A DNA stretch of 63,964 nucleotides, the filler included, from Octopus bimaculoides (taxonomy: Eukaryota), in NCBI RefSeq assembly GCF_001194135.2. It is 8 parts of 6 records of this genome, joined end to end, with 100 filler letters (N's around TTAATTAATTAA, not from the genome) between each part and the next. Parts side by side here need not be neighbours in the genome. Positions count along the whole stretch, not along the records: positions 23,691 to 34,784 come from NC_068997.1; 7 more parts are not named here. One strand, given 5' to 3'. Made by a program: the position numbers and the translations under genes. Every line of letters begins with the position of its first letter. Position 1 is the first letter of the stretch. Of this stretch, positions 23,691-34,784 are shown piece by piece. Below the pieces are notes generated by a model. That model worked only from the letters and a program-made list of their open reading frames with translations. It was not told the origin of the DNA and did not search any database.

Positions 23691-24531
23691 TCACCTGTAT
23701 CTGTTGCATCAAGCGAAAGAACATTCAGTGCACTTCGCCGTTTGAAGACCTGGCTCCATACCACAATGACACAGCACCGTCTTACACATTGTACCATAAT
23801 GCATGTACATAAAAAAATATACGATGAAAACACTTTGCACATCCTCATGAAACGTTTCATTAACAAAACGTTTGAGCGTAGGAACACTTTTAGAATATGT
23901 TGATACAGTTTTTTTCATATACGTGTGAATTATGGAGTGATGCAAAAACTCGGCTTACTTCTATTTTAACGCTACTTATAGCTTCATTATTTCTTTCTTG
24001 GTAAACTGACATTTGAATGTTCGGACGCGTGCTACTTGCTGTAAAAGGAGCGAAGTTATCCATGTAATACAAAAAGAAAATTGCAGATAAGTTGAATATT
24101 AAAAGTGAAAAATAATCATTGAATACTGAAAAAACATTCACCTCCCCTAACTTTAAACCCTAACCCTAATCCCTAACCCTTAATAAAATATGGGAAAAGC
24201 TGGAGATGAATGTTTTGAAAACATTCTGAACTATCTTTCAGAATGGTTTACTTTTCAATGAAATGTCATTTTGTTATTTTTCATGTTTTTATTCAATTAA
24301 TCTGCAATGTTCTTCTTGTATCAGATGGATAACCCACCCTCCGTTTACAGCAAGTAGCGAGCATCTCGTTTTTTACCTGTGTGCTAAATTTGACTACTTA
24401 CGACTAACGCGGGCGCATGCGCTAATTTGTGACATGCATACTCCCAGAACTCGGATCCACACTTCTCCAGTAGTGCCAAATTTTGAAACTGAGTTTGCAC
24501 CCCCTAAGCAAATTTTGTTCCCGGGCCACTG
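23691..24531 (+). mobile_element. 3' part of a hAT transposon (ZMYM1/THAP12-like dimerization domain)
   Basis: 23691-23903 translates SPVSVASSERTFSALRRLKTWLHTTMTQHRL...; ends in hAT-like terminus ...CCCGGGCCACTG. 5' end lost in the spacer gap. Confidence 0.85.
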
Positions 24532-24844
24532 GTAATACCTGCTGAAGAGAATTCGAAATCATGATCCAGGTATATCTGTTACCTTATTCTACGGCTTTTT
24601 AGCTGAGATAATATGTTAAATTCCACTCGTTTGCCCGATTTATGTTGGTCCGTTACATATTTTCAGTGAGATTAATGGTTAAGTTGAGAGTTTTTTACTT
24701 CCTCTTTGGAGCAAGCTGGTGCTTTGTGTACCCTTTCAGATAATTAAGAATTTAATGTATAGCTGTTTAATGCTAATATCACTTGCTACCATTAATGTTA
24801 TTTTTATTGTTAATATCAATTATTTAGATTTGCTGCTGCTGCTG

Positions 24845-24920
<76 letters not shown>

Positions 24921-24947
24921 TAATAATAAAAATAATAATAATAAAAA

Positions 24948-24978
<31 letters not shown>

Positions 24979-24981
24979 AAT

Positions 24982-25543
24982 ATCACTGCGTAATTTGAAA
25001 AAACCTGGACTTGCCCCATAATAAAAACTGGTGGGAACACAAACCACCCCCAGTACTTGAAAATGATCACATTGCACTCCTCTGGAACTTTACCATTCAA
25101 ACTGACAGAAAGAAAGATGCAAATAGGCCAGACATCATACTGAAAAACTTCAGACAAAAATCATGCCTCCTCATTGATATGACTGTCCCAATCGATATAA
25201 ACGTATCTGTCCAAGACCTACCAAAAACTGAGCAAATATAAAGATCTTGAAATAGAAATTAGCAAAATGCAGAACCTGAAGACGAAAACAATACCTATTG
25301 TCATAGGTGCCCTGGGAATGACAGCGAAACGGGCTGATTACTNNNNNNNNNNTAAAACAAACACAATTTTCTTATGGTTTCTTAAACATTCTCTAGAACA
25401 AAACTGTACAAATTCAAATATATGGTACCCTAGGCATAACACCTACATGAACTTCTAGCTTGTTGTCTCTTGAGGTCTCTGGGTGAGACTTGGATCCAAC
25501 TTGTACAAATGCAAAGCAAAAGTTAAACATAAAATAATAATAA
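24982..25543 (+). mobile_element. 5'-truncated Dong/R4-clade non-LTR retrotransposon (restriction-like endonuclease and 3'UTR)
   Basis: NWWEHKP...LWNFTIQTDRK..ANRPDII...LIDM...KLSKYKDL...PIVIGALG. Sits directly after a long (TAA)n and ends in TAATAATAA. Confidence 0.88.
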
Positions 25544-25594
25544 CAACAACATCTTTACGAGTATTCATTTTGAATATTTACTCATTCTTATGTA

Positions 25595-25669
<75 letters not shown>

Positions 25670-25890
25670 GGCTATATGTCAGTGTTTGTCACCCCCATCA
25701 CCGCTTGACAGCTGGTGTTGGAGTGTTTACGTTCCCGTATCTTAGGGGTTCTGCAAAAGAGGCCGATAGAATACGTACTAGGTGTACAAGGTAAGTACTG
25801 GAGTTGATTAATTTTACTATAATTTTTCAAGGCGATGTTCAAACGTGATTGCAGTCTAATGACTGAAACAAGAAAAGATGGTGACAAAAG
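25670..25890 (+). mobile_element. Family-A SINE tail half
   Basis: CGCTTGACAGCTGGTGTTGG...TGACTGAAACAAG. Similar tails at ~22300-22530 (+) and ~17625-17820 (-). Confidence 0.75.
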
Positions 25891-26865
25891 AAAAATTGTC
25901 TCTTACATACTCGTTGAATTCGTGTAGACTTTTTTACGAAAATATTTTTGACCGTTAGCATAATACATTGGCAGTCACAGGTTTATTTGTTGGTCGCAGT
26001 TAAAATATTTACCCTTAGATGTTTTCATTTTATATCAGTAGCCATGTGTAAATTTTTTTGATGTGTATGTTTGCGTGCTAATTTTGGCATTATATTGCGA
26101 TACGAATATGGTTTTCATAAGCAGTATTCTACTTATGATGGAATTTTAAAAGTATTTTCCTCTAGAATTTTTCTATTTTCTTTTTTTTTTATGTGATATG
26201 TGGTGTAATGTTGAGCAATAGCTTTATGCTGTAGGTGCATGCAGGCCTACGTGGAAGTGTTACAAAGTTGTTATACTGGATAAACCAGCGGAACACTCAA
26301 GATGCACCCTCCATTTTATCCGAACATAAAATCTATTTATTTCTTTAACTGATAAACAATCTAATTCTTTTCCTTACGTCTTTCGCTCTTTCCTTTTGAT
26401 TTCGATGAAAACGATTATAATTAGTAATATAATTAGCAAAACAATTATAATTAGTAATAATTTATTATCTCTTATTCCATTATTTCCTACCTAAGATATG
26501 CAACATACACAAAAAGGTTTGGCCATAGATATAAATGAATTACGAAACATTAAATATTATAATCATTAACAATATATACTAATTAAATGTTATATTTATT
26601 AACAACATAATTAAATCTTAAATTTATAAATAACATATTTAGCAACTTATGTATAATTATACATTTTGGTGAGGATGCTGGAAGAGAAACGAAATATTCA
26701 TTTTGATGATTTTGCTTACTTTCCTCCATTACACGAAAAACAGATGCACCAGTGATGCCATTTCTTGGCCTGGGTCTAGAAACCACAAGAGAAAACGAAG
26801 TTTAAAGGGTCTGCGCAATTATTTGGAAAGTACGCATGTGTCAAGTATCACTGATACTAAAAATA

Positions 26866-28158
26866 CGAGGGGCGTCTGAAAAGTTTTGAACCTAACCTAG
26901 AATTGGGGCTGCTATATAGTTGAAACATTTTTTTCTGGTAAGTACAGTCTTTTCGGAGTATTCTTGCTCATTTTCATGATTCTGATATTTTAATTTTATT
27001 TGCTGCAGATTTTTGAATAAACAAGCTTCGAATTTACAAGGAAAATGGAGAAAACTGAGTATCGTGCTGTCATAAAGTAGCTTCATTTGAAAGGCATGAC
27101 TCCATCAGAAATCCATGAAGATACGGTGAGAACCTTAACAGACAATGCTCCTTCATATGCAACAGTCAAACTCTGGGTAAATGAATTTAAGCGTGGCAGG
27201 GAGAGTGTGGAAGATGATCCCACACCAAGGAGACCTCCAACTGCAACCACTGAGGATAACATTGACCTTGCTCTTGGTATGATAATGCAAGATCGCCAAA
27301 TATCATGTCATCAGATAGCCGAGAGACTGGGCATCTCAACAGAAAGAGCAGATAACATTGTGACAAAAGAACTTGGGTTCTCAAAGGTTTCCGCAAGGTG
27401 GGATCCCTCGCCTTTTGACTCCTGAACAGAAACGTACCAGGTGCACTTTGTCCACGAGCAATCTGGAACTCTTTGAAGCCGATGAAGAGAATTTTCTTGC
27501 TCGTTTCATTACTATGGACGAAAGTTGGGTTCATCACTACCAGCCTGAAACCAAAGAACAATCAAAGCAGTGGAAGCACACATTTTCTCCTACCCCAAAG
27601 AAGGCCAGGGTCATTCCTTCAGCTGGTAAGGTCATGGCGTCTGTTTTTTGGGATTCTCAAGGTGTCTTGCTGATCGATTACCTTGAAAACGGTCACACCG
27701 TGACAGTGCTGTATTATTCTCAGCTACTGAAACGCCTCCGAGAAGCAATAAAAAAAAGGGGCCGGGAATGCTCACCAGAGGAGTCCTTTTTCATCACGAC
27801 AATGCTCCAGCCCACATCTCAGTGGTTGCCATGGCAACAATTCGTGATTGTGGATACGAACTTGTTCCCCACCCCCCTTATTCGCCAGACTTAGCCCTCT
27901 CCGACTTCCATCTATTTCCAAAAATGAAAAAAACCCTGGTTGGTCGCCATTTTGCCAGTGACAATAACGTCATAGACGCTGTAGGAAGTTTCTTGGCGTC
28001 CCAAACGAAAGAGCTCTTCTACGGCGGGATAATGGCGCTTCAGCACCGCTGGAGAAAGTGTTCAGCCATCGAGGGGGACTATGATGAAAAGTAAATCATC
28101 AGAAGTCTTGTACCATGTTTTGTTTTTTTGAGGCTCAAGACTTTTCAGACACCCCTCG
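26866..28158 (+). mobile_element. Full-length mariner (DD34D), irritans-like, 1293 bp
   Basis: 28-bp TIRs (CGAGGGGCGTCTGAAAAGTTTTGAACCT vs right end, 3 mismatches); TA on both sides (26864-65, 28159-60); contains transposase. Confidence 0.95.
27045..28094 (+). pseudogene. Mariner transposase with 3 lesions
   Basis: MEKTEYRAVIK* (TAG 27078); +1 A at 27403 in WVPRLL; -1 in the A-run near 27755. TMDESW, HHDNA and YSPDLALSD motifs present, with 34 residues between the 2nd and 3rd D. Confidence 0.93.
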
Positions 28159-28386
28159 TAGCCAATGGCGAAAATATTTCGTATAATTGGGTAATTTTCC
28201 CATTTCATCAAAGAATAGATTATCATCTGCTCAGATGACTGATACTCTGATTACAAGTCACTATTCTGGTTGTCCACGACAACAGTATCTGGCTAATTTG
28301 TCTTTAAGCTGTTATATCACAATTAAGTTTATAGCACTATATAAGTTGATATAAAACAGTTTTTCTTTTTACATCGCTTTATGTGA

Positions 28387-29289
28387 TTAATTTAGTTCAG
28401 TAGTTAATTCATGTGATACAGGGCTTGTTGGTTTTTTACATTTTGCTGAACATAATTTCCGAATACTTTGTCTTATTGTGGCATCAAAAAGCAACAAAAA
28501 TGGCACCACTACAAATCTTATCATATTTAATAAAAAGGGTAAATAATAAACAGGGTTTTTTATATTCGCATAAATTCCAATCAAAAAAATAATTTCTACT
28601 ATACAAGAGAGTACGATGAATGTCACAACAATGATCAAAGTTATTAAACGTGATTCTATGTTCTCACACTCTTTACTTTTCACTGCAATGTAAATGAATA
28701 GACCTACAAATACCAACATCGTAATAATATACAAAATTACTGTGCCAGAATAGATACAGAGGGAAACGAAATGTAAGAAAATAACACAGTGTTCACTTTC
28801 ATATTCCGAGGCCGCTAGAAGCAGTATTAAGTCTTCGATCCAGATGAAAACCCACAAAACAACTGTTAATATGATCTGGATATGTAGAAAACTGTGACTT
28901 TCATATTTGCTTGGTTTAAAGTATTTCACAATAAAATCACAGCAAATAGGAAGTATGAAATACAGAGCAGCGTCGTTAGTAACGGAAGTTAGTATAATAA
29001 TAAATAAGCAGGTAGACTGAGGTAAATCTGTAAATATATGAATATGTACGTTGTGGAAATAAAAGAACAAGGCAAACAGCGTGTAGTTAAACATATAGTT
29101 CAGTAATAAGAAAGCGCGTGTTTTCTCATAGGCTTTACGATCTAGAAAAATGGCAGTTGTTAACAATGCACTGAGCAGGAATATTACAATGGCCGCAACA
29201 GACGAAGATATATTCATCCAGGAAAATGAAATGATTTCGACGGTTTCAGTACCGTTCATATAGTCATAAGATACTTGATCGCCTTCCAT
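28387..29289 (-). CDS. Intronless divergent 7-TM class A (rhodopsin-like) orphan GPCR, 300 aa
   Basis: Uninterrupted 900-nt ORF in DNA where stops are otherwise frequent. Seven hydrophobic segments; N-terminal N-glycosylation sequons (NGT, NIS); Cys at top of TM3 (QSTC) and in ECL2 (SEHC); TM3 end ICCDFIVKYFKP aligns with the IAxDRYxAIxxP pattern; TM4 Trp; TM7 Pro (VVPFLLL); helix-8-like TIRQSIRKLC. In-frame TGA 8 codons upstream fixes the ATG. Confidence 0.88.
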   Translation of the reverse strand: MEGDQVSYDYMNGTETVEIISFSWMNISSSVAAIVIFLLSALLTTAIFLDRKAYEKTRAFLLLNYMFNYTLFALFFYFHNVHIHIFTDLPQSTCLFIIILTSVTNDAALYFILPICCDFIVKYFKPSKYESHSFLHIQIILTVVLWVFIWIEDLILLLAASEYESEHCVIFLHFVSLCIYSGTVILYIITMLVFVGLFIYIAVKSKECENIESRLITLIIVVTFIVLSCIVEIIFLIGIYANIKNPVYYLPFLLNMIRFVVVPFLLLFDATIRQSIRKLCSAKCKKPTSPVSHELTTELN

Positions 29290-29315
29290 GTTGCGTTGGC
29301 CAGAATTACTTCAAA

Positions 29316-29336
29316 CCTGAAAAAGAGAAAGATTTC
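29316..29336 (-). promoter_or_regulatory. Splice acceptor of a 5'UTR intron of the GPCR
   Basis: Minus strand reads tctttctctttttcag|GTTTGA: polypyrimidine tract plus CAG, 27 nt upstream of the ATG. Confidence 0.65.
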
Positions 29337-30786
29337 AATAAAAGAAAATGTATGAAATAATTTGCTTAAGAAATGTATTCTATTTCAGTTACGAGACCCA
29401 GTTTCACTTCGTAGTTAGGAGATTTTGAGCGAGGTTTTTAGTGTTCCATATAACTTATAGATATAAAATCTTTATTATCTTTTTCACATCCCTCATTTCC
29501 TAAATCCCTGTTAAAATATTATTTAGCGATTTCTGTGAAATAAAAAGTATTTCTATTAGATTCAAAACTCTGTTTCCAGTGACTGTGGTTGGAACAGTTC
29601 CAGTTGTGTTTCTAGTCTGCTACAGATATGTTGATATTCACAAATTTATAATCTCCCATTCGTTATATTTTTGAATCGTGGTGGTGTGTTTATTGAAAAC
29701 GAGAAGCATCGAATCCGAAATGGAATATTAGTGAAGACAGAATAATAAAACTGAACATAGCTATATAACTTCGAGTCAGATCGGATTCAGTCGTGAATAT
29801 CTCGTCTTTTTTAGTACTATATCTAGGACTCCATTATTCATTTACCGTTGAGAAAGTAAATATAGTTACTATCAACATAAACGATGAAAATTTTACATAT
29901 ATATATATATATAAATGAGAAAAGGAAGAAAATGGAGAACTTGACAGACAGACATTAGTTTATTCAAAGATATTCAAATCCATATGATGAAATTCTTGTC
30001 CTATAGCCATTTCCATATTCAATTAGTTCAATTACAGAAATTAATTTAATTTAATTTAATTTAATTTNNNNNNNNNNNNNNNNNNNNNNNNNNNNNNNNN
30101 NNNNNNNNNNNNNNNNNNNNNNNNNNNNNNNNNNNNNNNNNNNNNNNNNNNNNNNNNNNNNNNNNNNNNNNNNNNNNNNNNNNNNNNNNNNNNNNNNNNN
30201 NNNNNNNNNNNNNNNNNNNNNNNNNNNNNNNNNNNNNNNNNNNNNNNNNNNNNNNNNNNNNNNNNNNNNNNNNNNNNNNNNNNNNNNNNNNNNNNNNNNN
30301 NNNNNNNNNNNNNNNNNNNNNNNNNNNNNNNNNNNNNNNNNNNNNNNNNNNNNNNNNNNNNNNNNNNNNNNNNNNNNNNNNNNNNNNNNNNNNNNNNNNN
30401 NNNNNNNNNNNNNNNNNNNNNNNNNNNNNNNNNNNNNNNNNNNNNNNNNNNNNNNNNNNNNNNNNNNNNNNNNNNNNNNNNNNNNNNNNNNNNNNNNNNN
30501 NNNNNNNNNNNNNNNNNNNNNNNNNNNNNNNNNNNNNNNNNNNNNNNNNNNNNNNNNNNNNNNNNNNNNNNNNNNNNNNNNNNNNNNNNNNNNNNNNNNN
30601 NNNNNNNNNNNNNNNNNNNNNNNNNNNNNNTATATATATATTATATATATATACCCTTTAAGTTCGTTTACAAGAAACGTTTTTGAATATGCATATGATA
30701 GCTCCTATTTTATTATGTTGGCTACAGCCTAGTGATACCAACTGGTAATAGAAGTGTCTTGAGGTTGTACCGAGCTGTGCTGATAT

Positions 30787-30851
<65 letters not shown>

Positions 30852-30852
<1 letters not shown>

Positions 30853-31222
30853 GCAAGAGCACTCAGAGAGTGCAAACCTCCGTCAAGGCAACGCCAACGT
30901 CCTCTCAACGATTAACCGGAGATAATTTTTTAAATGAGAATATCTGAAATAAACTCGACTGCTCTCACAATCAAGAATACTAAAACTGAACCCGACCGCT
31001 CTCAGAAATTAAAAAAAAACGGAAAATAATCCAGAATCATTGTCCGGTACCGGATCGATCTCAAAATCTAATAAGTTCGTGCCAGTCACGAGAGCAAACA
31101 TCCTTGAAAGTTTCATCCGAATCCATTCAGCAGTTCTTGAGATATCTTGTCCACGGACAAACAAACAAGTAAACAAACATGACTGAAAACAATACCTCCA
31201 TCTTCGCTAAAGCGGAGGTAAT
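30852..31222 (-). mobile_element. Helentron-associated non-autonomous element (DINE/HINE-like)
   Basis: Minus strand: 5' ACCTCCGC with adjacent partial inverted GGAGGT; GTTT/GTCC microsatellite; core ATCTCAAGAACTGCTGAATGGATTCGGATGAAACTTTC; 3' subterminal GACGGAGGT then hairpin GCACTC-tct-GAGTGC. Inserted in an AAT tract. Confidence 0.75.
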
Positions 31223-31246
31223 AATAATCTATGGATAGAATTTATA

Positions 31247-31484
31247 AATTTATAAAGATTTTAATGCATCGCAACGCGCGTTTCCACATAACACATGTTA
31301 CTTACAATCAAAGTCTGTAGTCTTGGGATGATTACAGTTTTGTCCATAGTATTCATGGACATCGGGGGGATCATATTCATGCGTTTATTTCGTCAGGTGA
31401 TATGGCATTAACACGATCTATGAGCATAAGAAACATGTGATTTGTGGAAACGCGCGTAACGATGTATTAAAATATTTACAAATT
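31247..31484. mobile_element. Foldback/MITE with ~58-bp inverted arms
   Basis: Arms 31247-31304 and 31427-31484, about 85% identical, core AACGCGCGTTTCCACA. Confidence 0.7.
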
Positions 31485-32239
31485 CCATTCGTTGACATAT
31501 ATTATTTTAATTCAGTCAGCATCTTACATCTCAGTTTCACTTGTAGGCACACAGACAAGTTGTGACAGTAAAATTGATAGAGTTAAGACATTTATATATA
31601 GTTATGGTTTTTTTGTTACAGAGTGTGATGGTGGGTAGAATGTATTACGAAGAGGGAAAGGATGAAAACAGGAGGGAAGAAGAGAAGAGAAAAATGGGAA
31701 AAGCTGGAAAATGAGGAAGAGAGAGAAGATTACTAAAAAAAAAAAAAGCAGGAAAAAGTTGGAAGAAACAAGAAAACATGCAGTTGGACGGGCGGGACTA
31801 GAAAAAACGCTGCATATGGAAGGAAATTTGGGTAAAATATGTCAGGTAAGTAAAATAAGATACAATGAAAGAAAGCGAGGAAGATGAGTAGAACAAATGA
31901 AAGGGTTAAGTGTGCAATATCGAGTTTCAGGAATGATAACAAAGGTACTGAACATAAGTAACAACATGTGGCCTACACATATATTATGAATAAAGAGGGA
32001 TTGATGGCAAATGTAGTAGTAATGTGAAGTGTATATGTACTTTTACTTTTAGCAGTTCCGATAGTAGCAATTGGGATAATAATGAAGTAATAAAAAGGAA
32101 GGGATAATGATTGTTTGGTAATATTGGGGTGGGTAGTAATTATTATGGGAAGGATAGAGATGAGGCCCTGTGACTAGAAATTTGCGTGCAGGGTTACTGC
32201 TACCCTGTAAATAGAATTCGTCTGGGAAGGAGCGTGTTT

Positions 32240-32750
32240 AAATACTTGTTGACTGAATTTCCTTTCATGTAGGCAGGGGAAAATGTTTTTTCTCATGAGT
32301 TTAGGTGCAGACAAGATGTGCAGTTTTTCGGTTACACAGAGATTACATCTTGTACCCCGTCCATTATAGGCACTTGCTTTAGCTAAAATTTTCCACTTAA
32401 TGGTAGGATTGTTTATATGGTTGTCCTTCTACTATTGTTACGAATTGTATATAGGTGTGCAAAACAACCCTTAAAGGGCTTTGCTGTGATCTGTATACAT
32501 GATTTTACGGGGTCTCCATCATTCTGAACTTCGGTCTTATAGACGAGCTCTTTCGAGAGGCACTTATCTAGTGAACTGGTTTAGCATGTGCAGTTTCCTT
32601 ATTGTGACCCTATATTTCCGAGGCAGTTCTAGTTAACCATGCCCATGTGCTTATTGAATATTTTGTGGTATTTGTGTTGACTGGGGAAGTGCATTCTTAT
32701 AAGATAGAGTAGAAAGGTCCAGCGATATTGTTTAATGCATTGATACTGAA
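32240..32750 (-). mobile_element. Penelope-like retroelement fragment (linker plus GIY-YIG endonuclease)
   Basis: Degenerate translation HFPSQHKYHKIFNK...LDKCLSKELVYK...IKWKILAKASAY...RCNLCVTEKLHIL...CLHERKF. Confidence 0.85.
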
Positions 32751-33618
32751 TTTTTTTGTTTGTTTTGTTTTTGAAACATGAAACGAAAGTTTAAAGGAAA
32801 CGCTTATCCATATGTTCTTTCGTTTAAAAATCTTTGTGAACGACACGTGCACAAATGGCTGCCTCAGGCTCATGCTTTTGATTTTATTTTATAACTGTAA
32901 GTTATAATGTGTTCGCGGGTGTTCCTTTGGCATGTATCCTTGCAGACCCATATACGCATAAATACACATATATATACACCGAATTATGTCAGATGAACGC
33001 ACGTGCGTGCATTCAACTGACAGAAAGATAGGAGTAAGAATTTTATGATAGAGCAACCGAAGAAAAACCGGCTAGATGCATTTCCATCGGTCTGTAGTAG
33101 TCAAGTGGAGTCCTGCGGAATACAGTAGTGGCGTTGAGGGTGTGTTGTTTATTTCCACTAGAGTTTAACTTGTAACTAAAGGATCCAAATTACTAATGCA
33201 ATGAAAGAAAGCAGAGGAGTTGATGCATTCCTTGAAGTAAACGAACTTAAATTGTCTGAATTTGTATATATTATACGTGGAATTTTCGTATTTCTATAGG
33301 CATCCTAAAGTATTCTTTCTCAATCATTATTAAAAGCTATTACATCGTTCAGTGCTCGTCCACAGGAAACCTGTATCTTTGAGCATTCTTAAACTTTGCA
33401 GTCAGTTAGATCATGCATCACTGATGAAGGCTAATAAGGAAGAAACCAAATTTGAAAAAAAAAAAACGCTCGTGAAATATTCCTCAACCCAATATGTACC
33501 AATGTGTATATTTGACAAACAAATTATGGCACAAGTGATTCCATATTGTTGTTTGAGGCAACGAAATGTATAAACAATAAAAATATGATTTGTTGTAGAG
33601 TAGAGGGGTAAGTCAGTA

Positions 33619-33642
33619 GCCAATATGACGTCATTGACGTAA
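33619..33642. promoter_or_regulatory. Candidate CCAAT plus tandem CRE motif cluster
   Basis: GCCAAT-A-TGACGTCA-T-TGACGTAA in non-repetitive DNA; motif match only. Confidence 0.25.
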
Positions 33643-33848
33643 AACGAATATTCGAAAAAGAGTAAATATATTGGACCACTGCTGAGGAATTTAGAAAAAA
33701 GAATACCGTTGGGGGCATCCAAAAATGAACCAGCCCACCGACCCACCTCGACTAAAATAAGGTATGACTTGTATTCTTCGAGAAGGAACAGAGACATTTG
33801 CCTGACATTGAAAGTTTAAAGAAGAATGGGTAGAATAAATATTTTTTA

Positions 33849-34276
33849 TCTTTCACTTGTTTCTGTCATTAGACTGCGACCATGCTGAGGCACCGTCTTG
33901 GAAAATTTATAAGTCGAATGAATCGACCCCAGTATTTATATTTTAAAGCTTGGCACTTATTCTATCGATCTCTTGCCGAATCACTAGTTTACGGGGACGT
34001 AAAACACAAGCATCGGTTGTTAATTGCTGGTGGCGGACAAACACAGGCATAAATACATACACACACGTAAGCACGCACGCATGCACACTCCCACACTCAC
34101 CAACACACACACACACACACACACTCGCGCGCACACACACATACGACAGGCTTCCTTTAAATTTCGTCTACCAAATCCACTCAAAGGCTTTGGTCGATCT
34201 GAGGCTATAGTGACACTGAACCCTGAATCATGTGGTTGGGATGCAAGCTTCTTCCCATACATGCACGCCTGCACCT
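33849..34276 (-). mobile_element. Composite family-A SINE
   Basis: Head (CAAATCCACTCA..GGCTTTGGTC), (CA)n, tail. Confidence 0.85.
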
Positions 34277-34745
34277 ATAATAAAAAAAAATAATGGAACG
34301 AACAACAAAAAAAAAAAACACAAGAACAAACATACAAAGCAGACGCCGTTTTTATTGCATTTTATTTTTGCTTAATGGTATATAGAAATATGTGTGTTAT
34401 ATAGAAATATAAGTGTACATTTGTGTTCTTTCATTATTTCACTTCTTTTAGTTATTGGACTGCGACCATACTGTGGCACCGCATCGATGCCAGTACTCAT
34501 TATAAATCTGTTAGTTATTCGATGGTTCTCGTTTTACCGAATGTGAACAAAAGTACCCCGGTTTCCATGCAATGACGGCAGTACAAACATGAACACAAGA
34601 GAGAGCCTGCCCGTGCATGTACACACATACACTCACACACGAAAGCGCATTTATATTTTTTACAAACTTGCTACCCAGCATGCGACCTGTCATATCAAAG
34701 ACTCTAAGAGAAAAACTACACAGACAGCTAAATACATATATACAT

Positions 34746-34784
<39 letters not shown>

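Follow-up and report, generated by a model that had tools for sequence, protein, structure and literature searches.

A candidate class A-derived receptor lacking most canonical activation residues, in a small tandem gene family of octopods

The receptor gene and its predicted fold

The window analysed here, by which we mean the whole stretch of 63,964 nucleotides, is composed of eight parts of six records of the Octopus bimaculoides genome (GCF_001194135.2), and the part taken from NC_068997.1 (positions 23,691 to 34,784) carries on its minus strand an intact open reading frame (ORF) for a putative seven-helix receptor, the subject of this report. Its features are listed below, with positions in G-protein-coupled receptors (GPCRs) of class A given as numbers such as 3.50 and with TM standing for transmembrane helix, ECL and ICL for extracellular and intracellular loop, and UTR for untranslated region.

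28387..29289, minus strand: intact receptor coding sequence (CDS) from the ORF list, ATG to stop, 300 amino acids (aa) plus stop, single coding exon
29290..29316, minus strand: 5′ UTR part of the coding exon, 27 nt between splice acceptor and ATG, read from the sequence and laid out in the same way in paralogs
29317..29345, minus strand: polypyrimidine tract and AG splice acceptor (…tttctctttttcag, with g as the first base beyond the cut), conserved in paralogs
29008..29010, minus strand: codon of C94 (C3.25), the disulfide cysteine at the start of TM3, invariant in 24 family sequences and aligned with rhodopsin C110
28930..28938, minus strand: codons of D118-F119-I120, in place of D/E-R-Y (3.49–3.51), placed by sequence, by spacing from C94 and by the hhalign register
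28786..28788, minus strand: codon of C168, the disulfide cysteine in the predicted ECL2 hairpin, invariant in 24 family sequences and aligned with rhodopsin C187
28492..28506, minus strand: codons of V262-P263-F264-L265-L266, in place of NPxxY with only P7.50 kept, placed by sequence and hhalign, P263 being conserved in at least 90% of sequences
28390..28413, minus strand: codons of HELTTELN, the extreme C-terminal motif (residues 293–300), with E294 and T296 at least 90% conserved, the most distant members included

The ORF product matches exactly a protein from O. bimaculoides chromosome CM046617.1 (GCA_001194135.2, 286062-286964, reverse strand), and the identical protein is also present in NCBI nr and UniRef. 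At 35% G+C and a stop probability of 0.073 per codon, chance would give the 11-kb piece about 2e-6 ORFs as long as this one, so that a 300-codon frame lies far above chance.

Residue by residue, the protein combines a few class A landmarks with the loss of most others. The DFI triplet lies 25 residues past C94, which is the class A spacing from C3.25 to R3.50, and hhalign sets it on the D/E-R-Y columns; position 3.50 itself is F, V, L, I or Y in 22 of 22 family members and Arg in none. At the NPxxY site the family consensus is L-P-F-L-W. TM6 (residues 209–241 in both structural models described below) contains neither proline nor tryptophan, and the whole stretch of residues 174–241 is free of proline, so that P5.50 is missing together with the CWxP motif (P6.50). 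R3.50, P5.50, CWxP, N7.49 and Y7.53 are in fact missing in every family member. At position 2.50, where class A receptors carry Asp, the column is hydrophobic (hhalign pairs it with L74, flanked by A73 and F75, the TM2 register being uncertain by about one residue), and the N1.50 site holds Ser40 in a column with Asn in 11, Ser in seven, Asp in three and Tyr in one of 22 relatives. W4.50 is kept as W146 (at least 90% conserved, aligned with rhodopsin W161). The N-terminus carries two N-glycosylation sequons, NGT and NIS, and ICL3 comprises about 4–10 residues. At the other end of the chain, the tail H-E-L-T-(T)-E-(L/I)-N is kept even in members with only 24–32% overall identity, which is unusual for receptor tails; it does not match the classical hydrophobic-end pattern of PDZ ligands.

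Two AlphaFold models were obtained, one from 14 sequences (predicted local distance difference test, pLDDT, 68; predicted template modelling score, pTM, 0.62) and one from 21 sequences (pLDDT 79.5, pTM 0.77). Both show seven long helices (15–49, 56–85, 91–124, 132–159, 174–204, 209–241 and 246–266), an ECL2 hairpin and helix 8 (H8, 270–282); in both, only four residues separate the helices 174–204 and 209–241, and in the second model the hairpin strands, 161–164 and 169–172, are predicted around C168. Searched against PDB with Foldseek, both models returned class A GPCRs as 50 of the best 50 matches, with E down to 4e-6 and TM-scores (template modelling) mostly of 0.6–0.77 (range 0.35–0.77), the second run giving 459 matches at E ≤ 0.001. 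The best matches were histamine H4, GPR119, adenosine A2A, muscarinic, dopamine D2, LPA1 and opioid receptors, and the non-GPCR fold that might have spoken otherwise did not appear.

The fold is joined by a profile–profile comparison. When the 22-sequence family profile was aligned by hhalign with four class A receptors, a probability of 86.5% and an E of 4.6e-6 were obtained over 253 columns, extending from TM1 to H8, in a register that equates C94 with C3.25, DFI with (D/E)RY, W146 with W4.50, C168 with the ECL2 cysteine and P263 with P7.50. When the alignment was repeated, the real profiles scored 40 over 256 columns (40–50 across comparisons), against 10–17 over 5–68 columns for the controls, namely reversed profiles, 20 local column shuffles and bacteriorhodopsin. 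From models and profiles together we conclude that the receptor family appears to descend from class A GPCRs but lies beyond the reach of ordinary hidden Markov models (HMMs). A sequence-only reading of the window had pictured an intact seven-helix frame with both disulfide cysteines, DFI for DRY, no proline in TM6, VPFLL for NPxxY and a very short ICL3, and had taken the product for a highly divergent orphan GPCR; this picture agrees in each point with the residues, helices and alignments given above, to which the losses of the TM5 proline, of Asn at 1.50 and of Asp at 2.50 are additions.

An octopod family under selection

Relatives of the window protein (P0001) were sought in a word-indexed search of 5.8 billion proteins, which gave 14 matches, and in an exhaustive phmmer scan of 1.84 billion representatives, which gave eight matches, one of them spurious. 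P0021, from a repeat-rich sturgeon record flagged as contamination (E 3e-6), was discarded as a spurious low-complexity match. Among the named sources of relatives there are only O. bimaculoides, O. sinensis and Argonauta hians, while the remainder come from sequencing runs; a profile search of the 5.8-billion set and a further search started from P0019, the member most distant from the others, added only P0026 and no named non-octopod. Outside octopods the family was thus not detected by these searches, the divergent P0019 and P0026 being from samples without an assigned organism. More than 20 paralogs and orthologs of the family are intact.

In O. bimaculoides six loci lie on the same strand within about 65 kb, in the following order of transcription.

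First: 315-aa gene (L001:989-1936)
Second: window gene (P0001), 9 kb past the 315-aa gene
Third: P0003, 15 kb past the window gene
Fourth: 256-aa ORF (L002:16059-16829), 6 kb past P0003, with the first ~45 codons missing
Fifth: P0010
Sixth: P0015, the 304-aa gene

The 256-aa ORF is 87% identical to O. sinensis P0008 from residue 33 on only, most of TM1 lies outside the open frame and no gene is called there; it may be a truncated copy or a pseudogene. About 10 loci were seen in O. sinensis, where the first two array genes stand in the same order, the 315-aa paralog being upstream of an intact ortholog of the window gene.

Comparison with that ortholog (86% aa identity, one codon indel) gave a synonymous rate (dS) of 0.140 and a nonsynonymous rate (dN) of 0.066, hence dN/dS 0.47, from 25 synonymous changes in 196 sites and 44 nonsynonymous changes in 701 (Fisher p 0.006). 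In a neutral simulation with 69 random substitutions only 4% of the copies remained free of stop codons. The window gene is under purifying selection; its 315-aa neighbour is more constrained still, with dN/dS 0.26 and 94% aa identity between the species. The sequence-only reading had anticipated this selection, as well as a lineage-specific receptor, and here too the results go the same way: dN/dS is not near 1, and octopods are the only named sources in both protein searches, which returned no close bilaterian ortholog of a known receptor family.

Variation is unevenly spread over the protein. Across 22 members the columns of the extracellular half have an average entropy of 2.05 bits and those of the cytoplasmic half one of 1.31 bits (Mann–Whitney p 4e-13), the peaks being in ECL2 and ECL3 and in the outer portions of TM5, TM6 and TM7; when the window gene is compared with P0003, the outer half shows a dN/dS of 0.93 and the cytoplasmic half one of 0.41. 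A variable outer half over a conserved inner face is the pattern expected of receptors that diversify their ligand binding while keeping one intracellular partner.

Taken together, we hold with good confidence that the ORF is probably a functional member of a small tandem family of octopod receptors, derived from class A GPCRs and deprived of nearly all the canonical activation residues. Several observations weigh against this interpretation. In Pfam hmmscan at E ≤ 10 the window protein matched no family, including 7tm_1 and the other GPCR clan models, and in the same scan of 14 members, the window protein and 13 relatives, no GPCR model appeared among scattered weak matches to unrelated membrane families. 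In the PDB sequence search the protein found no match, and the family profile gave a meaningless one to ND4L (E 0.34). With neither Pfam nor PDB matching, the evidence for class A descent consists of the fold and of the profile–profile alignment, the latter made with four class A sequences entered by hand (rhodopsin, A2A, CXCR4 and the beta-2 adrenergic receptor). The constraint on the window gene, at dN/dS 0.47, is weak, and its CDS does not exceed the flanks in nucleotide identity to O. sinensis (92.3% against 89–94%). With six loci seen in O. bimaculoides and about 10 in its relative O. sinensis, the family is small when set beside the tens to hundreds of genes of chemoreceptor repertoires.

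Probable structure and surroundings of the gene

The sequence-only reading had called the gene intronless, and this stands in part: the CDS is uninterrupted, whereas the 5′ UTR appears to contain an intron, whose acceptor lies 27 nt upstream of the ATG. Of the eight loci compared at first, six have an acceptor 27–30 nt before the ATG, namely P0001, P0003, P0010, the 304-aa gene, P0002 of O. sinensis and P0019, a distant member; the same acceptor also occurs in additional genomic contigs of octopods. Two contigs can be compared for P0026, likewise a distant member: L011 (ERR12370324; 1-201) keeps the acceptor and intron sequence, and L010 (ERR12374249) is 100% identical to L011 from the first base past the AG, 30 nt upstream of the ATG, and begins with 219 nt (L010:1-219) unrelated to L011 and joined exactly at the AG. 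Because the two diverge exactly at this point, L010 is to be regarded as spliced cDNA and L011 as the unspliced form; to judge from this pair, the family is transcribed and its acceptor is used in at least one member. By the conserved acceptor and the example of P0026, the window gene would likewise have a 5′ UTR intron. In the octopus loci compared, no match to the 219-nt 5′ exon of L010 could be detected, and the 5′ exon of the window gene was not located. Logan contigs from SRR11869384, SRR11869391 and SRR11869394 had been considered as transcripts and were set aside as genomic, since they keep the intron acceptor or contain repeats. The 315-aa paralog (L001:989-1936; L004:3167-4114) departs from the common layout: one acceptor lies ~70 nt and another ~17 nt ahead of its ATG, with a possible GT donor between the two, an arrangement that suggests a mini-exon.

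NCBI gene models for the family exist in two species. P0003 and P0010, whose non-overlapping coding exons lie 33 kb apart, are listed as isoforms of a single gene, LOC106869328, and three O. sinensis paralogs, 50–86% identical to the window protein along its full length, are listed as LOC115220942 X1–X3. Moreover, when the window gene was compared with its nearest paralog P0003 (blastn of L001 9925-10948 against L002 9925-10945; window position = 39290 − L001 position), the sole alignable segment was 28342..29365 on the minus strand, that is, the CDS with 76 nt upstream and 45 nt downstream, 82% identical; since only this much can be aligned, no copy-specific promoter or first exon is visible. 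The isoform grouping, the conserved acceptors, the acceptor use in P0026 and the short alignable segment hint at one or more shared 5′ exons. The array might then be one transcription unit, with a shared promoter and shared non-coding 5′ exon(s), the latter being spliced, mutually exclusively, to one or another of several terminal exons that each encode a complete receptor and lie up to ~48 kb apart. We regard this arrangement as improbable on present evidence; if true, it would be a choice of splice sites by which a cell could express one receptor from the cluster, and so of wider interest for the problem of receptor choice.

The surroundings of the gene were fairly described in the sequence-only reading as decayed DNA, for a mariner transposase with a broken frame is found in the flanks together with microsatellites and an assembly gap. 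These and the remaining features of the piece are as follows.

24145-24180: telomere-like CCCTAA repeat (2.8 copies of a 13-nt unit)
24719-25157: poly-Ile and poly-Leu "ORFs", which are translated ATA repeat
24845-24982: microsatellite (ATA)46
25613-25666: microsatellite (TA)27
27087-28094, plus strand: decayed mariner/Mos1-type transposase in three reading frames (HTH_48/HTH_32; Transposase_1, E 1.6e-20; DDE_3)
30068-30630: assembly gap, written as N, ~780 bp upstream of the receptor ATG
30787-30852: microsatellite (ATA)22
33411-33797, minus strand: 128-aa ORF with no Pfam match, treated as a chance ORF in repeat-rich DNA
34084-34141: microsatellite (CA)n

The transposase is part of a mariner block of ~1.37 kb (~26863-28235) that lies ~300 bp downstream of the receptor stop codon, and the block may be in or adjoining the receptor 3′ UTR. 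It has no counterpart at the orthologous O. sinensis locus, so that it was either inserted in the lineage of O. bimaculoides or deleted in O. sinensis. The assembly gap could conceal upstream regulatory or exon sequence, and it explains the apparent 2% G+C of the stretch 30191-30690, which had been picked out as a feature (GC 0.02) and was rejected. An Rfam scan of the piece found nothing.

Possible mode of action and comparison with known families

If the protein is a signalling receptor of class A descent, as we prefer to think, its outer pocket (ECL2 with the outer portions of TM5, TM6 and TM7), being variable, would let different paralogs bind different ligands, and a cytoplasmic surface peculiar to the family would relay the signal to a single intracellular partner common to them all. 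This surface would be built from ICL1 (D-R-K..K-T-R, with D50 invariant and both R51 and K56 kept in 90% or more of the sequences), from the end of TM3 with ICL2 (P-I-C-C-D-F-I-V-K-Y-F-x-P-S-K-Y-E, in which C116 and I120 are invariant and P114 is at least 90% conserved), and from TM7 (P-F-L-W-L-F-D), helix 8 (T-I-R-Q-S-I-R-K-L-C) and the C-terminal H-E-L-T-x-E-L-N. Because R3.50, P5.50, CWxP, N7.49 and Y7.53 are absent throughout the family, activation cannot depend on the microswitches that are standard in class A. A G protein may serve as the partner, as in other motif-poor chemoreceptor families, or it may be something else; we put the chances of G-protein coupling by the window receptor at about even. 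A conserved cytoplasmic face without R3.50, P5.50, CWxP and NPxxY offers a natural test of how a rhodopsin-like protein works when its canonical microswitches are gone.

A narrower form of the same interpretation, that the protein is a dedicated contact or olfactory chemoreceptor of the suckers, skin or olfactory organ, is possible and is offered tentatively. It was the first of two functional options in the sequence-only reading, the other being an atypical receptor not acting through G proteins. The family is lineage-specific, tandemly arrayed, encoded in single coding exons and fast-evolving, with a hypervariable outer pocket, a pattern that Nath et al. 2025 (PMC11886862) also report for class A expansions of lophotrochozoans regarded as candidates for chemosensation. 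Against it stand the ~6–10 genes seen per species and the fact that contact chemosensation of the octopus is ascribed, at least in the papers as cited in PMC11886862, to nicotinic-receptor-like chemotactile receptors. Should the family be expressed in suckers, skin or olfactory organ, it would provide candidates for a GPCR-type chemosensation alongside these ionotropic receptors.

Somewhat less likely, in our estimate, is an atypical, non-signalling or decoy-type protein of class A fold (a scavenger, co-receptor or trafficking partner) that does not activate G proteins. The family-wide absence of R3.50, P5.50, CWxP, N7.49, Y7.53 and an acidic residue at 2.50 would suit such a role, as would the very short ICL3 and the strongly conserved extreme C-terminal motif, suggestive of a docking or trafficking partner. 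The variable outer pocket over a conserved inner face, however, fits a ligand-diversified signalling receptor, and missing motifs are no proof of non-coupling: the vertebrate bitter-taste receptors, the vomeronasal type 1 receptors and the nematode chemoreceptors are motif-poor and yet couple to G proteins.

We consider it very unlikely that the gene is a strongly diverged ortholog of a known bilaterian family of amine, peptide or lipid receptors. Aminergic, adenosine, GPR119, lipid and opioid receptors do lead the Foldseek matches, but these matches are scattered over many subfamilies with similar scores and 11–18% identity, the two protein-set searches gave no sequence homolog outside octopods, and Pfam gave no match. 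Least credible of all is a pseudogene, a chance ORF or a non-GPCR seven-helix protein convergent on GPCRs, for which the silence of the sequence libraries and the location among decayed repeats might be cited, in the face of a chance expectation of ~2e-6, a dN/dS significantly below 1, more than 20 intact paralogs and orthologs, and a profile alignment in register at C3.25, D3.49, W4.50, the ECL2 Cys and P7.50 that scores far above the controls.

The preferred class A-derived receptor is worth comparing with known systems. Like the class A GPCRs of Pfam 7tm_1 and the GPCR_A clan, it shows a seven-helix bundle with helix 8, an extracellular N-terminus with glycosylation sequons, an ECL2 hairpin, the disulfide cysteines of C3.25 and ECL2, an acidic residue at 3.49, W4.50 and P7.50; it differs in matching no 7tm_1 or clan HMM, in having none of the canonical motifs, in a hydrophobic residue at 2.50 and in keeping N1.50 in only about half of the members. 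With the lophotrochozoan class A expansions (PMC11886862) and with those of cephalopod GPCRs (Ritschard et al. 2019, PMC6408891) it shares tandem clusters, the lack of one-to-one orthologs beyond its own lineage and a higher variability at the extracellular ends of the helices than elsewhere. Those lineage-specific expansions, of which cephalopods have few such genes according to Nath et al., retain DRY and NPxxY (text of PMC11886862), whereas the octopod family is without both. They were also gathered with Pfam (the signatures used for octopus GPCRs by Ritschard et al.) or with class A HMMs, in contrast to the octopod family, which Pfam does not detect and which is much smaller than their groups 1–4. 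The UniProt ids of two O. bimaculoides paralogs are absent from the supplementary tables of PMC6408891, as far as these exist in text form, and literature searches by locus, protein and UniProt ids found no paper on these loci. Cephalopod surveys that rely on Pfam signatures would not see the family; the published ones appear to have missed it, and counts of octopus receptors may be incomplete for this reason.

Closer parallels in overall design are found among chemoreceptors that have themselves drifted from the class A consensus. The bitter-taste receptors (TAS2R), the vomeronasal type 1 receptors (V1R) and the nematode chemoreceptors are proteins of ~300 aa with a short N-terminus, encoded by a single coding exon in tandem clusters, and have lost the DRY and NPxxY consensus. 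The octopod family resembles them in size, N-terminus, coding exon, clustering and motif loss, and is distinct in that no sequence or Pfam relation to them was detected and no bitter-taste structure stood among the best 50 Foldseek matches. TAS2Rs, moreover, are not known to have the disulfide between TM3 and ECL2, the cysteines for which are kept in the octopod family. Atypical chemokine receptors such as ACKR1 provide another example of a class A fold with DRY altered or lost; these are single genes close to canonical chemokine receptors, whereas in octopods a whole family is without the motifs and has no close canonical relatives. Motif-poor, lineage-specific seven-helix families are common in invertebrates, and the octopod family is best described as a strongly derived form of the rhodopsin-like receptors, rather than as a new kind of system.

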